Source: Podarcis cretensis
Lineage: Eukaryota
Length of the DNA: 64,000 nt
Assembly (NCBI GenBank): GCA_951804945.1
Contig: OX638156.1
Location: forward strand, 50,654,001 to 50,718,000
Reading direction: 5' to 3'
This document shows positions 36,415-53,370 of the stretch, piece by piece. The notes under the pieces were generated by a model. That model worked only from the letters and a program-made list of their open reading frames with translations, was not told where the DNA came from and did no database searches. Every line of letters starts with the position of its first letter. The first letter of the stretch is position 1. A program made the position numbers and the translations under genes.

Positions 36415-37650
36415 GGCAGCAAAAGGAGGATGCACATGGGCTCCACTTCCGGTAGAGAGCCGGAAACTGAACTACAAAGAAGCCCGCTGCACTATAAACA
36501 CACAAGAGGCAAAACTTCCGTCTTCTTTTATAGTCTCTCAATTCCCGAGTTTAGGGGCAGCCTCGATTACATTCTGCCTTTCCCCCCCCCCAAATGATCC
36601 CAGCAGGGCTGCAGATCTAGCCCTCAGGAGCAGCCGAAAGCCGTGTGCATACCGAGAAGTTGCGTTTTATAGTATTTAAAAACCGCTCGCATTTCCCATG
36701 CAAAATAAAACGCTTTTAATGCAGCTTCACTCCCTTTGGTCTAGTTTGAATAGTTGCCCATTGTTTTTTTCCCCGCAGTTGTGTCGGGTGCTAAGACTTC
36801 GCAGAGTGATATGAAAAGAAAAGGATATCAACAACGGAAGAAAAATTATGGGCAGCCCGAAGAAGTCCTTATGGAGCCCAGCCCCATATGCAACCCGTCT
36901 CCCGACCCAGAAATCGCAGGTGGGGCTTTACCCCACCACCTTCATCTCCAAGTCCCTTCCCTCAGCCAACCAAGCAGGACCGATCTCCGGGACCCCTGTT
37001 CCCCAGGCTGCCCGAGGCAGAGGCGTAGGGCGCCTTCCTGGAAGGGGCGAGGCAGGCCGCACAGGCGTGAAGGGAGATGGCCAGCATGAAACGAGAGAGG
37101 GAGAAACAGCGGCTCCCTTTGATTGGCTGAAGAGGCACAAGAGACAACGCGGGAGCATCTGGCAACTGCTGAAGGTGATCCCACCCCCCAGCCGTCGGGG
37201 CATCTTGATCCCCCCCCCTCTCTGGTGACTTCGCACGTGCAGCGCAGCTGCAGCAGCAGCAGCCATCACCCTGGAAACCCCCTGCCAGAGACAGTGTCCC
37301 GGTCTCGGCCCTCGTGCCCCGTCCTGTATCCTCCCCAAGTCCGATTTCTCTGCCTCTGTCTGTTGGAACCTGCCCGGCTGCCCCCTTGATTTCCCTGGGC
37401 AAGCAGCGCCACGGCGAGGGGCGAGCTGCCCATAGCCTTCCCTTCCACCCTCTGCGCTTTGTGGGCCTCCAGGCAGAGGAGTGAGCAGAGAGAGCCCCGC
37501 TGGGACCGGGACGGTGCTGAGACTACAGGGTCCCAGGCTCTGAGCCAGCGCTGCCCTCCGCGGTCCCCCCTCCTGCCCCGCCCACCGACTACGTCAGGGG
37601 AAGGACCCGTTAAATGTCGTCACTTACGCCAACGCCCCCTTCCCGGCGGG
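36415..37650. promoter_or_regulatory. Divergent CpG-rich promoter region between DHODH and TERF2
   Basis: Start codons 1.24 kb apart and facing away; ETS CACTTCCGG, E-box CACGTG, ACTACA (ZNF143-associated) motifs, GC box. Confidence 0.75.
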
Positions 37651-40600
37651 ATGGCGCGCGGGAGAGGGAAGATGGCGGGCGGCGGCCCTGGAGCGTCTCT
37701 TGCTGCATCGCCCGAAGGAGCCTCGGAGGCTCGCGAAAAGGCCTTGGAGGAGGCGGTGAACCGGTGGGCCATCCTCTTCTACGCCCACCGGGCCCTTCAG
37801 GCTTTCCGGGCCGGCCGCAGCCAGGACTTTCGCCAGCTGCGCGACGTCATATACGGTGAGGAGACCAGTTTGTTTTACGAAAGGGGCATTTGGGGAACAT
37901 TCTCGCTGGGTTAAATAACTGTAAACGTGAGTGTAAACAACTAATAATAATAATTTTATTAGTTATACGCCGCCCATCTGGCTGGGTTTCCTCAGCCACT
38001 CTGGGCGGCTCACAGCACATATCAGAACATACTAAAACATCAAGCATTAAAATATGTCACGTAATAGCCCTGGTTCCACTTATGTCACTGTTACTTATTT
38101 ACATTTATATATTACATTTAATAGTCATTAGGTGTTTTCATTTAAGAAATAATGAACCTAAAGCAACTTAAAATATAATACAGTCTGTGTCCCTGGAACG
38201 TTTGTCATTTGCCTTTAGACATTAAGGGAAATAATAATAAATTTTTATTTATACCCCGCCCTTCCCGGTTCAGAAAACCGGGCTCAGGGTGGCTAACAAA
38301 TTTAAAACAATTGTGATACAACAAAAAACAGCATAAAATACAGTATAAAAGCGTGAATAACAATACATTCAAAGTTCTAAAATCAGTTTTGGGGGAAATT
38401 CATCCAATAATGATTTTTAAAGAAAATGCACAAAGTACAACTAACCAACAGCACAGAACCCAGAAGGAAGGTCTGAAAACAGCCAGCTGTGATTCTCAGG
38501 AAGATGGTTAGGATACATACATCCCCCCTTAAATGAATGCTTCCTAAAGCCCATCACAGATGGTCAGGAGAAGGGTTAGGATCCCCCCCCCCAGGCCGCC
38601 TTTAGCCTCCTAAGTACCTGAAAACTTCAGAGCCTTCGTGAAATCTATTTCAGATTGGAGAATGTTGATGTGTGTATTAAGAGATTGAGTTTAATGAGTT
38701 TTGGGTGTGGCCTGTAGTTGAGTGTGATGGTTTCCAGAAGCCAACCATTAGGAATGGCCTAGCACCTTTGGAGTGTAGTTCTAAGAAACTCAACTACTGT
38801 ACTTTACCATTCATTTTCTTACAGTAATTACTTCCGTGTGTCTATAAATATTTTAATGTTTCAATATTTTAATGTTGTATTTTAATTTTGTTTTTAAGTT
38901 GTAATCATTCAATTTGTTTTTATTATTGCTTATTAGCCACCCTGAGCCTGGCCTTGGCTGGGGAGGGCGGGGTATAAATAAAAAATATTATTATTATTAT
39001 AAATAAAATTTGTACATACTGCATTTCTGCCCCACAAAACTAGAGCTCCAGCAAGATCTCTCACCACAAAGATTAAGACACTAAAAAAAAAAAAGTGTGT
39101 TTGTGTATATATAGATACTAAAAGATATTCAAGATCACACACAAAAAAACAAGAAAATGCAAAGTGACTCCTGGGCCAAAGGGCACGTTGGGATGAAGCT
39201 GTCTGTCTGTATATGGCCAGGGATACAATATATGGGACAGTGCTTTGGTGCCTTACCCAAGCCTCGTTACACCTGGTTTGCTGAACTATCTGATTTTGCT
39301 TAGTGGCTGTTTTGACTGTCTTGTTCTTCTCCAGCTGTGCTTGCAAGGCCCCTAGTGCTAGAGAAATGCATTGGCATTCAGCTGCGGATTATCCAGCTTC
39401 TGTCTAGGATTGAAGAAGATTGGACCATTGATACCAAGACCAAGTTAACACCTCTTGAATATGCCCTTGTTCTTTTGGATAAGATGAAGAATGAATTGGA
39501 CATAGGCATTGATATAATACAAGAAATAAGAAATAAAATAAAGGAAGCAGTAAGTGTTAGCATTTCCTCTTCTGTAGGCACTGATTACTGTTTCTCAGCC
39601 TAGTTAGTATGAGGACAGCTGTCTTGAGTTTCAAAATGCAGTATATTTAGGAAAGGGTTTAATTAAGGTGCTAATTCAATGCCAGGATTAACTCTTGCCT
39701 GTTTTTCTCCATGCTTAAATTGGACTTTTAAATAAGTTCACAAAAATTAATAGAAGCAAGGAGGCACGATTCCTATATGTTGGGATGAAATGAAAGAGAA
39801 ATGTCTCCTCAGAAGTGCCTGAGTTTATTGGAACTCAGCATGTTTTGAAAACCTGTTTCCTTCGGGGGCAATCCAGGAAAAGCTGGCTTCTGGACTTTCC
39901 TGAGGCATACATTATTTCAATGTTGTTAGCCTACAGACTTTTAAGTAACTTGCCTTACTTGATTTTTTTAAAATTCTTTAATAAGTGGTCTAATATTACA
40001 CAATGAAAACACACATTGGGTTGAAAATGTGAAGCAGATCTAGAAAATTGCCAGAGGGATATCTCTCAAACAGTATCTTCTTAGATTAAGAACAGTCCCC
40101 CAAAGTCTTCCTTGCAAACCATTATTTTGTCTTTCTTCTCCAGGCTATTATAACCTGTTTAAAAAACAAAGAATATGAACAAGCCAGCAGGATCTTGAGG
40201 AAACACATGTCAAAGGACCCAAGTTCCCAGGTGAGCTTTCAGCAGGTATGAGTTCATGTCGCTGCTGTTGTTGAAATGTGCCTCTTATAGGGTCATTTCA
40301 CTGCAAAGCAGAGTCATGGTTTGTCCTTCCCACATTCTCCAATTCAGTGAGTGTCTTAAATACTTGAGTTTATTGTCCCCCTTATGCAATGAGAAAAATT
40401 GCATCCACAAGCAGCCCATGTTGCTACAGATTGTGGTCCACATCTCTAGTCATCATTACTTTCATGCATTTTTTTACATTACCTAGATTGCTCTGGTAGT
40501 TTGGCTTGTTTTGTTTAAACTTCTAATGACTGCAAAAATTGCTTTTATCTCTGCCCTGTGCTGCAATTTGCTTGCAAGTACTGAAAAACATTTCCCCTTG

Positions 40601-43600
40601 CTTAGAAAATGAGGTCGATGTTCCAGAGCATCATCCGAGAAAAAAACTTCGCTCATCCAGCCATCTGGAACTTCTCCTATAAAGCTTTCCAGCAGAGAAT
40701 ACTTCTGTATTTAGAAAGCTGCTTGAGTGACTCTGAGCCCTTTCTCTTAGAGGTAAGCAAGGGTATGGAGTGCTGCTTGATTGAGATGTGGGATGTTCTA
40801 GTGGGAGTATAGCTTAGTAGTCGAACATCTACTTTGCATGCAGAAGGTCCCAAGTTCAATCCCTGGCATCTCTAGGTAGGACTGGGAATGTCCCCTACTT
40901 GAAACCCTGGAGAGCCGCTGTCACTCAATGTGTGGTGATAGGAAACTATATGAACCATTGGTCTGGCTTGGCAGAAGGCAGCTTGCTTTCTTCATATATT
41001 TCTGTGTGTTGCTGGAGCATTTCAATATCACCCACATTGCCACAGCAGAACTCTTGCCGTCTAAACACTGTGATCAAAAAAGTACATTCAGCACCTGAGG
41101 CTTAAGACAGAAGCCTCCCTGGCCAAACTATTATGTGTTTGGGAAATATTTTTGTGAAGAGCCAAGTACCCCACAGCAGAACAGCACAGGGCTCCAATGT
41201 CACATTTGACATATATCAAGCTTGTAATCTGACAATGTTTTGGACTAGCAATTCCCAACAGCTCCAGCATCATGAGGCTGTGCTCCAGCATCATGAGGCC
41301 CTACAATTAGGGGATTTGTAGGTAAAGCATCTTCAGGGCACCAGCTTGGGCATGGCTGCTGTATATAACTAGAAAAAATAAAAGTTGAGAAGTGTTCTCT
41401 AGTAACTGTGTTCACATTCTCTGTTTAAGATGGCAAAAAGGGATTCGGATGATCAGATAGAGACCAGGCTCAATCCTTTGGAAATGGCCAGCAAGGAGGA
41501 AATGGTGAAAGAAACCTCAGAGGTGGCAGCAGCAGATAATCCTGAATCTGTGGGAAGATCTGATGAGACTTTGGAAGAGCCCCGGCCTGAGGCAGGGCCT
41601 AGAAATACAGTGGAAGAACAGCCAAAGTCTATGGAGGGAGGCCGTGAGACAGTTGCAAAGCCTTTGATGGAGGCAAAGGGAGCTGTTTTGGAGCTTGCTA
41701 AAGTGGTTGATGAGTGCCAGGCAGCTTCAAAGCCTGAAGAAGAAACCAGTGGAGCTGCAGAGCCTGCTGTGGTTGCTGTTGCCACTGTCTCAGCAGTTTC
41801 CAGTGACTCTGACAGGTTAGCAGCCTATGGCCTCTTACAGTTTTGACTCCCTTTGCCATGCTGGGCAGCTGTTTTGCCATACAACTTCTGGCTCTCAGCA
41901 CTCAGACTCAAATTGCACCTGCTGCCAGGGGAGCAAGGTCTTGGGGGTGAGGTCAGCAACATAAATTGGCAAAACTTGTGGAGCAACCTTCTGATGTTTC
42001 TTTATTTTGCAGATGCTCGCCTAAGAGGATGGGCTCGTATGGGTTTTCTACTCTGAGGGATGCTTTCAAGATCCTGTCCAATTCCCCAGATGCAGATGAA
42101 GAGTTTTCAAAACTGGACAAGTTGGACTGGACTTTCCCCAAGCCATGTTTGGCTTCTGATTTCCACGCAGCCAAGTGCCAAATGGGGAAGAACCGTGCTG
42201 CCTCCAGGCCGCACCCCAGTGAACGCTCAGTGTCCATAAGCACATTGGTTATGGGGTCAGAGAGCTGGGACCCCCCAACTTCCTGCCGAGTTCCATCCAA
42301 GAGGCCTGTGGCAACTTTGGTTGTCCGGCCTGCACAACCCCAAAAACCCACCCAGCCTGATGATACCTCCCGATATCCCAGGTAAGAGGCTATGACTGCT
42401 GTGGGGTCTGCTGGGGAACTGGCACAGCATGAGGCATTTGGTGCAACTTTCACCTTTGCAAGGAATCCATTAGAAGGCCTTAGGCCTCAGCCCAGAAGCT
42501 CCAAGGAAGGCAAAGGTGGTTTGCAGTGGTAGGGTTGCATCGCTGTGCATCTTCTCCCCCAGCTAGTAGAAGCAGATTGCGAGAGAATCTGGTTCACATA
42601 CCTTGTCTTAATTTTTATTACTCAGATTGCAAAGATAGCAGAATTGACAATACGGTCTCTGGCCCCATTAAAGATTGCTAAACAAATTTATTGTGACAGA
42701 AACACCTGTGCCGGACTCTGCTTTGTCAGATGCCTGGAATGTTAGCTTCAGTTGCCAGACAGAAGGTAGAAAATGTTATTTCTCTCCCCCCTCCCTCCTT
42801 CCATCTGTACCAAGGATAAGGGTTTGTGTTTTTGCCACCAGCTATTTGCTCATATTTAAGCTGCCATAGGTCTCTGCAGTGGTGTGTTTGCTGTGACAAA
42901 TTAGCCTCGCTCCTTTTCTGATACTTAACCCAGCATCTCCATAATCCTGGTTGTGTGCGACATTAATTGATGCAGCTCAGTCCCGTCTCATCTCCTTGTG
43001 GGGTAGGTCTTTCCTTACTTGTGTTTCTCTGTTCCATTCAGATTAGCAAAGAGGAGACTAATTTGTTTAAATCGGGATGAAGAAAAGGAGGTCTGGAGTG
43101 ATGAGGATGAACTTTTTGGTAAGCAGCTAGTATCCTGTATACAGTAAGCAGAGGGATTTGGGGGCACAGCTCTTGGATCAGAAAAGTAAAATATTTGGAC
43201 TACCTACTCCCAAGTGCGCAGCAGCAGCACTGACAAAATTACTGCCTTTAGCCTCAGACTGGCTTCTTGTTCTGCATGATGCTCAGTTGTAGCTCCATGC
43301 ACTCTTCTAATTAAAGCAGCTGTGCAGTTTTGATGGCTTCTCACATTGCATTACCCAGTGACATCACAATGACATGGGGAAAAACATTGCCAGCATGGCA
43401 AGCAAAGAGAACTGCGGTCCTTCAGGAGGCTTGCTTAGGCAATGCGCAGACTAGCTAAAAGCAAAACTCTCAAAACCTGGTAAACATCTTGCAAAACAAA
43501 GTGATAAATTTTGTGAACCATGCTAGAATGAGATGGCAACTGTGAGTGAACATGGATGACTGTTTGCCACATAGTTTAGGGTTGCCATATCTTGAAGAGC

Positions 43601-44921
43601 AAAAAAGAGGACAGCCTGAGCCAGGGAAGGAAGTGCACCTACATTCTTCTTTTCTCAGCTTGGGCTGGCGGCAGCAGTGGTGTGTAGAGTTGGCCAAGCA
43701 ATAAATGAATAAATAACCCCTCCCTACAACCCCGGACATTTCCTTTAAAATGTAAAGATCCCCCTGGATGCGCCTGTTGGCCCCCCAAAAGAGGACATGT
43801 CTGGGATGCCCTGGATGTGTGGCAACCCTAACATAGTTCCATCAGTAGTTGACTGTACACATCATGCCAAGGGCTGGGTGGAATTTGACCACTACTGTGG
43901 ATTTCTGATGAGGTGCAGTAGTGGTAAAACCTCCCAACTGCTGAGCCAGTAGCAATAACCAGCTTACCAAGTGGTTCCATGCATCCCATAAAGTTTGTAA
44001 ATGAATTTGTGTTTCAGAATCGAAGGAAGAAAGCAGCAGCAGCATCAACACTTCCCTCTTTGGTTCGAAAAAGAAGGTAACCAAGCCTACACCCAGTCCG
44101 GAGCTGAGCACTCCAGTGGGGAGAAATAGGCCTGCCTTGACAAGACCCCTCTAAATGGAGGCCAGTTGATGAGGACCCCCTCTCCCAAATGAAATAACTG
44201 ATGAAATCCCCATTAATGGGAACATAGGAAGCTGCCATATGCTGAATCCTGGTCCATCTAGCTCGGTATTGTCTGTGCTACAGGGTTTCAGGCCAGGTGT
44301 CTCTTTCGTGGCTCTACCTGGAAATGTCACAGGTTTGAAGCTGGGATCTTCTGCATGTTCAACCACTGGACTAAGGGGCCTCTTCTAATTAATTAAATAA
44401 TCAAGGGTCTTGGATACCCAGGTGTTTCAAAGAAGCCTGGGCAATCTCAGCACATTATATCTACTATATTTGATGGCCTCTTCAACCACACTTTAAGGAG
44501 GCAGAATTTTATTTTTATTACCCACATATTGCAGAAGGAGGACTAAGTGTGCCACCAAGTTGGGTTTAATGTCTTGAAATATGGGCTGGATATTTGCCTG
44601 CTGTGAGTTACTGGGCTACATGTCAGTGGCAATCCTCTGTTAGCAACAGCCATGGAACCATCTCCAGAGGGTGGGGTATCTGTCGTTCTGTCATGGGGAC
44701 AAGGGGCAAGTCTTGCAGCACTTGATGGTTGCTCATGAGAGCCTATGCCCTCTTCTTTCTAGATCTGGACTTCAGAGGAGTCTCAGTGGATTAAGGAAGG
44801 CGTGAAGAAGTTTGGGGAAGGGAGGTGGAAAGCCATTTCCCAGGCATTCCCCTTTAAGAACCGCACTCCTGTGGCGATCAAGGACCGATGGCGGACTATG
44901 AAGAATCTGGGGCTCTTGTGA
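37651..44921 (+). CDS. TERF2: Telomeric repeat-binding factor 2; 9 exons, 567 aa from the first ATG (alternative ATG at 37672)
   Basis: Exons 37651-37855, 39335-39549, 40144-40230, 40606-40752, 41430-41815, 42013-42381, 43042-43118, 44018-44076, 44763-44921 sum to 1704 nt in frame. TRFH ([18 protein letters not shown]), RAP1-binding ([10 protein letters not shown]...FSKLD), TIN2-binding-like (SISTLVM), iDDR-like ([13 protein letters not shown]), Myb/telobox (WTSEES...IKDRWRTMK); adjacent to TMED6-NIP7-COG8 as in human. Confidence 0.96.
40805..40990 (+). mobile_element. Squam3-like SINE
   Basis: tRNA-like head TGCATGCAGAAGGTCCCAAGTTCAATCCCTGGCATCTC and GAAACCCTGGAGAGCCGCTG body; related copies at about 44220-44380 (-), 49950-50135, 52030-52160 and 63830-64000 (-). 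Confidence 0.75.
43577..43830. mobile_element. hAT (Tip100-like) MITE in TERF2 intron
   Basis: TIR TAGGGTTGCCA / TGGCAACCCTA; perfect 8-bp TSD ACATAGTT. Confidence 0.88.

Positions 44922-49419: not shown

Positions 49420-53370
<3,951 letters not shown>

Follow-up and report, generated by a model that had tools for sequence, protein, structure and literature searches.

In a stretch of 64,000 nucleotides (nt) from the lizard Podarcis cretensis (assembly GCA_951804945.1, contig OX638156.1, positions 50,654,001 to 50,718,000 of the forward strand; referred to below as the window, with positions counted from its first letter), the gene TERF2, which encodes TRF2, has a single 215-nt exon in place of the ancestral exons 2 and 3. 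Two changes of different age appear to meet in this exon. The older one, on the squamate (or lepidosaur) stem, would have shortened the loop between helices 3 and 4 of the TRFH domain by four residues, and the same old change would have replaced the Phe of the peptide-docking site (human F120) by Ile, Val, Thr or Met. The younger one, on the branch leading to these lacertids, would have removed intron 2 cleanly while introns 1 and 3 were kept. An exact fusion of exons 2 and 3 in lacertids, an older and separate loop change on the squamate stem, and docking that is kept with a changed proline contact together make up the reading that we consider likely.

The fused exon and its short loop

Three features of the window carry this reading; a slash marks a border in the sequence.

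39335..39549, + strand: fused exon (ancestral exons 2 and 3), 215 nt, encoding TRFH helix 3, the loop and helix 4; continuous in RNA-like contigs (three runs) and in a DNA-like contig (a fourth run).
39418..39419, + strand: former exon 2/exon 3 junction, GAA G/AT TGG, within an Asp codon, phase 1; snake and gecko open reading frame (ORF) fragments break at the same point.
39418..39432, + strand: loop codons D-W-T-I-D, with Trp at 39421-39423 and Ile, at the Phe120 position, at 39427-39429.

The exon is bordered by an acceptor, ccag/CT at 39334/39335, and a donor, GCAG/gtaagt at 39549/39550, and the frame that starts at 39337 runs through 71 stop-free codons (VLARPL...KIKEA). Its continuity was followed in Logan contigs, whose RNA and DNA labels are guesses. 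Twenty of the 24 sequencing runs listed contain the stretch wholly or partly, with eight studies represented, and four runs were aligned to 37600-40800; the RNA origin of three of these is marked by spliced joints. These three RNA-like runs, from three studies (X15 and X17, organism G; X20, organism H), have GT..AG joints at 37855>39335, 39549>40144 and 40230>40606, and in their spliced contigs 39334-39549 is uninterrupted, with no internal joint. One contig (X20 record 16, 671 nt) covers exons 1 to 4. In the fourth run, a DNA-like contig (X5 record 24, organism B) is unbroken over 39307-39585 and thus contains intron, whole exon and intron. Because the spliced contigs from all three RNA-like runs agree with the DNA-like contig over both borders, the fused exon is genomic and is spliced as read. 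A preliminary description of this DNA, made from the sequence alone, had claimed one intron-free exon of 215 nt and had proposed RNA as a check; the frame is open and the RNA-like contigs have no internal joint, and the exons of 87 and 147 nt that it placed next (40144-40230 and 40606-40752) are joined in spliced contigs. An assembly artefact, in which complementary DNA (cDNA) or a retrocopy was built into the gene assembly, has the single absent intron in its favour, and its probability appears close to negligible: introns 1 and 3 are in place in the window, the DNA-like contig that runs from intron through exon to intron (39307-39585) bears another organism label, and the stretch is found in runs of eight studies.

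The 71-residue peptide of this exon matches the human TRF2 TRFH chains 4m7c, 1h6p, 3bua and 3bu8 with E values of about 5e-7 (phmmer, PDB chains). The alignment has a single gap of four residues, opposite g-e-n-l, and sets D-W-T-I-D opposite D-C-S-F-D. When the start of chain 1h6p is counted as residue 43, the Phe of DCSFD is F120, and the window residue at this position is Ile. The missing GENL and the Ile at the F120 equivalent, first proposed by comparison with the human protein, are therefore both seen in an alignment to human TRF2 chains.

How widely is this loop distributed? A scan of the exon peptide against 1.84 billion representatives gave 16 matches, the 15 best being squamate or squamate-like and the 16th a turtle. 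A word-index search with the Tiliqua TRFH listed the best 120 of 213 matches, squamates first and mammals next, and a loop census was taken over 137 stored rows, which include isoforms and do not equal counts of independent species. The squamate rows cover geckos, skinks, a cordylid, lacertids, a teiid, the amphisbaenian Rhineura, Elgaria, Varanus, iguanians and snakes. GENL plus Phe occurs in 0/58 squamate TERF2 rows. In 52 of the 58 the loop is short and has Trp two residues ahead of the old Phe position; in these rows the F120 position is occupied by Ile (39), Thr (9, geckos), Val (3) or Met (1). The other six are a Zootoca TERF2-like row with Phe at the Trp position, an exon-2-less Phrynosoma row with DWTID, three alternative Varanus models and one row without the region. 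Every one of the 76 mammal rows, among them platypus and marsupials, has the long loop with Phe, EEGENLDCSFD, and the single row of the turtle Chelonia mydas reads EEGENLDCTFD.

By parsimony, the long loop with Phe would be the ancestral state of amniotes, as the preliminary description had assumed: had all non-mammalian outgroups lacked GENL, that assumption would have fallen, and GENL is carried by the mammal rows and by the turtle row. The short loop is common to all squamates sampled and the long loop is found in mammals and the turtle, and for this reason the short loop appears to have had a single origin before crown squamates diverged, on the squamate or lepidosaur stem, tuatara lying outside the sample. 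The loop had earlier been called lineage-specific, a claim that has to be given up, since the short Phe-less loop runs through the squamate rows. No report of a loop change in squamates or of intron loss in TERF2 was found in the literature searched, a limited library; the main text of PMC8653790 gives the docking site as present in vertebrates and mentions no squamate exception.

Loss of intron 2 and its relation to the loop

In the window, 39335-39418 measures 84 nt and 39419-39549 measures 131 nt, adding up to 215, with the junction GAAG/ATTGG at 39418/39419. A profile search with a nine-row alignment, limited to short proteins, gave seven matches, among them genomic-ORF fragments from relatives. 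Four fragments contain exon 3 only, three of them (P0015, P0139 and P0140) nearest to viperid/colubrid TERF2 and one (P0141) nearest to Gekko; each has unrelated pyrimidine-rich text directly before DW and intron read-through after the exon. The residue ahead of Asp is Leu or Val in 4/4, which fits a codon ending in A followed by G/AT, that is, an AG acceptor in phase 1. Two further fragments, P0142 (snake-like) and P0143 (Pseudonaja textilis), contain exon 2 and read ..SRLEE and then into Gly-Glu. This Gly-Glu after EE, present in both exon-2 fragments and in the alternative Varanus models, fits a G/GTGAG donor. In Varanus komodoensis, the Ensembl-type models P0011, P0025 and P0044 read EE-GECGEP-TEQ and the NCBI model P0035 differs from them at the exon 2/3 junction, a conflict that points to an intron with alternative sites there; the Ensembl-type models probably use wrong splice sites. 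In the Phrynosoma model P0014, exon 1 is followed at once by DWTID, so that 28 codons, or 84 nt, are skipped in frame.

From these fragments and models, the EE and DW codons of snakes and at least one gecko appear to be split by an intron at exactly this junction, in genes that already have the short loop. The intron whose absence had been noted from the window alone thus lies at exactly the same point in relatives (snake-like and gekkonid-like fragments). Because the intron-bearing snakes and gecko already lack the 12 nt, the short loop and the intron loss would be separate events, and the lacertid intron loss would be both later than the 12-nt change and exact. In the accepted phylogeny of squamates, lacertids stand between geckos and snakes, and hence one precise loss on the lacertid branch is the economical reading.

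The preliminary description had instead proposed a single imprecise genomic deletion in the lizard lineage that removed 12 coding nt along with intron 2 and so made the short loop. It is true that the four missing residues adjoin the old exon junction and that the exon is fused. Such a deletion is nevertheless extremely improbable, since snakes and a gecko that retain the intron are already without the four residues, exon 2 is 84 nt long in intron-bearing relatives (seen as the in-frame skip in P0014), the window junction is an exact concatenation, and the short loop is common to all squamate rows. Another account would make the intron-less state ancestral in squamates, with an intron gained in snakes, geckos and varanids, and it gains some room from the fact that the intron evidence here comes from squamates. 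It is very unlikely, as it calls for the intron to have been gained independently, twice or more, in Gekkota and in Toxicofera, each time at the same nucleotide and in the same phase, both neighbouring exon borders are conserved, and the human intron presumably lies at the same place. We therefore keep to an old loop change followed by one exact intron loss. Of the overall interpretation first put forward, the identity as TERF2, the missing intron, the loop shorter by four residues and the Ile stand, whereas the imprecise joint deletion, the restriction to one lineage, and the involvement of SLX4, NBS1 and MCPH1 do not.

By what route could the four residues have disappeared? Since their place is the very 3′ end of exon 2, two routes may account for the old change: either 12 nt were deleted from the exon end, or the 5′ splice site moved 12 nt upstream, onto the Gly-Glu codons. 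In the ORF fragments, the squamate intron starts with GTGAG where outgroups encode Gly-Glu. A donor shift of 12 nt in phase 1 gives EE/D without any deletion of DNA, and an exon-end deletion gives the same protein; the ORF fragments fail to separate the two because GTGAG is a consensus donor anyway. A more specific proposal, which we put forward tentatively, is that a 12-nt donor slide on the squamate stem removed GENL without DNA deletion and, with the replacement of Phe by an aliphatic residue and the gain of Trp, re-specified the docking site. Were it true, some 11,000 species of lizards and snakes would recruit Apollo, PNUTS or other partners by a contact geometry that is not that of mammals and turtles.

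The docking groove and its partners

In human TRF2, L101 and R102 form the cleft that receives the Tyr of the docking motif, and this Tyr bonds to S98 and E94; helices 2 and 3 bury the motif Leu between them, F120 is the residue on which the Pro stacks, and R109 and D81 supply hydrogen bonds (PMC7672075). The window, like squamates as a whole, keeps five of the six groove residues named there (E94, L101, R102, R109 and D81); the sixth, S98, is Gly in the window and variable in other squamates. The aromatic Phe of the helix 3-4 loop (human F120/F162) is absent, with Ile in the window and Phe at this position in none of the 58 squamate rows.

Docking has probably been altered rather than abolished. 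Because the short loop with its Trp is well conserved throughout the order and the groove residues are kept, the docking site would still be under selection, with an altered proline contact, rather than dead. Squamate TRF2 may thus still dock Y-x-L-x-P partners (Apollo and PNUTS) with a changed contact to the motif proline, and the part played by Phe may have passed to the near-universal Trp or to the aliphatic residue. As to which partners matter, the docking motif is amniote-wide in Apollo and PNUTS only; in NBS1 it belongs to placental mammals, in MCPH1 to primates and in SLX4 to haplorrhines (PMC8653790). The docking loss first proposed for SLX4, NBS1 and MCPH1 is thus beside the point in reptiles, as on the same source their motifs are mammal- or primate-only (PMC8653790).

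Several points weigh against the joint reading, some on its docking part and others on its history. F120A abolishes peptide binding by human TRF2 in both isothermal titration calorimetry and co-immunoprecipitation (PMC4334113; PMC7672075), and docking could equally be lost. The loop regions of the AlphaFold2 (AF2) models are moderately confident, the block predicted local distance difference test score (pLDDT) being 79-81 in the lizard and 54 in the platypus model. As for history, birds, crocodilians, tuatara, amphibians and fishes lie outside the rows listed (the best 120 of 213 matches). The intron elsewhere rests on six short ORF fragments and two annotation oddities, four of the fragments being placed as snake or gecko by similarity. 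The intron evidence covers snakes, a gecko, Varanus and Phrynosoma and, for the loss, Podarcis-like lacertids, so that the loss may lie anywhere on the branch leading to these lacertids. In mammals and the turtle the intron presumably has the same position, the human TERF2 exons measuring 96 and 131 nt.

The AF2 models themselves place a helix up to E95, a loop at 96-107 and a helix from P108 in the lizard, and a helix up to G146, a loop at 147-160 and a helix from P161 in the platypus; both are too coarse to place the loop.

If docking at the TRFH site has truly been lost in squamates, Apollo and PNUTS would reach telomeres otherwise, or leading-end processing would differ. This outcome would agree with the effect of F120A in human TRF2, with the lack of Phe at that position in every squamate row and with the lack of conservation at S98, the hydrogen-bond partner of the motif Tyr. 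We think it possible but doubtful. The five groove residues E94, L101, R102, R109 and D81 are retained; the short loop, too, is strongly conserved, with Trp in 52 of 58 rows and its Asp/Asn frames kept from geckos to snakes, which argues for continued selection; and Ile, Val or Met can still pack on proline.

Docking that is kept in altered form is of interest because F120 is the single residue that has been used experimentally to uncouple mammalian TRF2 from Apollo and other accessory factors. The rows suggest that a whole vertebrate order is without F120 and has a shorter loop, with a near-universal Trp beside the old position. The squamate loop would then be a natural variant of the docking site, open to a co-evolution comparison with the motifs of Apollo and PNUTS.

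The surrounding gene, its copies and known systems

The other features of TERF2 in the window are as follows.

37651..37855, + strand: exon 1, coding part; ATG at 37651, end TACG/gtgagg, phase 1; tblastn 92-95% against Podarcis TERF2; joint 37855>39335 in three RNA-like runs.
40144..40230, + strand: next exon, 87 nt; joints in contigs; Pfam TRF (PF08558) 18.2 bits, under the cut-off of 25.
40606..40752, + strand: next exon, 147 nt, ending in FLLE; joint 40230>40606; Pfam TRF 15.2 bits, under the cut-off of 25.
41430..41815, + strand: putative hinge exon, from splice consensus and tblastn.
42013..42381, + strand: putative exon of the Rap1-binding motif (RBM); Pfam TERF2_RBM (PF16772) 59.7 bits, cut-off 27.
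44763..44918, + strand: last coding exon, Myb domain; tblastn 100% against Podarcis and Lacerta TERF2; 5′ limit approximate, from tblastn; Myb_DNA-binding 55.3 bits.

By synteny, by the domain order TRFH/RBM/Myb and by the fold of an orthologue model, this gene is the syntenic TERF2 (TRF2) of a Podarcis-like lacertid. TERF2 of Podarcis lilfordi and P. muralis matches the window at 91-100% identity over most exons (tblastn), with lower identity in the segments 43040-43204 and 41487-41582, and the identity of Lacerta and Zootoca TERF2 is somewhat below that of Podarcis; the window fully equals neither of the two Podarcis protein sets. The Rap1-binding motif, which is TRF2-specific, is recognized by Pfam at 42014-42382, and the C-terminal Myb/SANT telobox domain (PF00249, cut-off 24.4) at 44763-44915. 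In the exon-by-exon Pfam search, the 87- and 147-nt exons gave sub-threshold pieces of PF08558 that are colinear on the profile, and exons 1 and 2, each alone, gave no match. Database orthologues, 91-100% identical on most exons, stood in for the joined window exons, and they carry PF08558. An AF2 model of the P. lilfordi orthologue (P0032) has a mean pLDDT of 59, with the TRFH blocks mostly at 80-92; it matches human TRF2 TRFH chains with template modelling (TM) scores of 0.81-0.86 at about 53% identity, versus about 25% identity with the TRFH of TRF1. Downstream of TERF2 and on the same strand, at 51673-53367 (+), maps the TMED6 part of Sceloporus read-through models, and TMED6 presumably lies beside TERF2 in the human gene order as well. 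These models, the NCBI models P0004 and P0018-P0020 of Sceloporus undulatus, merge TERF2 and TMED6 under the product name TMED6, probably a read-through annotation.

Intron 1 contains high-copy interspersed repeats at 37921-38027, 38135-38348 and 38777-38990, where the summed contig depth is very high in 4/4 runs (up to about 1.5 million in X5) and many contigs have loose ends. The N-terminus encoded at 37651-37700 has a short Gly/Arg-rich start; TERF2-like copies are without it and begin with MEDLGC or MEGGGC.

Two such copies evolve fast, one in Zootoca vivipara (P0005, annotated as 'TERF2-like', 439 aa) and one in P. lilfordi, on a different chromosome-sized contig (P0002, 145 aa). In the N-terminal part, identity between the two copies, and between each of them and TERF2, is 64-74%, whereas lacertid orthologues are 88-91% identical among themselves. 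P0005 is without the exon of the Rap1- and TIN2-binding motifs and has Phe in place of Trp in the loop. P0002 falls within the lacertid clade on a long branch of the tree, and because its read-through past KIKEA is nearly identical to the intron text of the window, this copy appears to be DNA-based. A second, canonical TERF2 elsewhere in the genome had been named beforehand as something that would overturn the loop change; the two lacertid copies exist, but they carry the short loop and so are not canonical back-ups. Viperid TERF2 rows also fall into two groups of the tree (P0043 with P0048, and P0052 with P0054), each with one Crotalus and one Vipera row, which suggests two TERF2 lineages in vipers too.

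Precise losses of single introns are rare in vertebrates and are explained by recombination with reverse-transcribed mRNA or by microhomology-mediated deletion. Like members of this class, TERF2 has lost one intron with an exact junction and has kept the introns on either side; the loss would be an ordinary if rare kind of event, of use mainly as a phylogenetic marker. The cDNA-recombination model favours other positions, whereas the intron lost from TERF2 lies towards the 5′ end. The older change resembles 5′ splice-site shifts (intron sliding and fixation of an alternative donor), in that the four-residue difference likewise coincides with the very 3′ end of exon 2. The closest known system is the TRFH docking site of human and mammalian TRF2, with structures for Apollo (PDB 3bua), SLX4 (4m7c), NBS1 (5wqd) and MCPH1 (7c5d), which by synteny, domain order and fold belongs to the same gene. 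The lizard keeps the human groove residues E94, L101, R102, R109 and D81 but not S98. Compared with human TRF2, its loop after helix 3 is four residues shorter, and the Phe that stacks on the motif proline is Ile here and Val, Thr or Met in other squamates. The Trp found in 52 of the 58 squamate rows is absent from mammals and the turtle.

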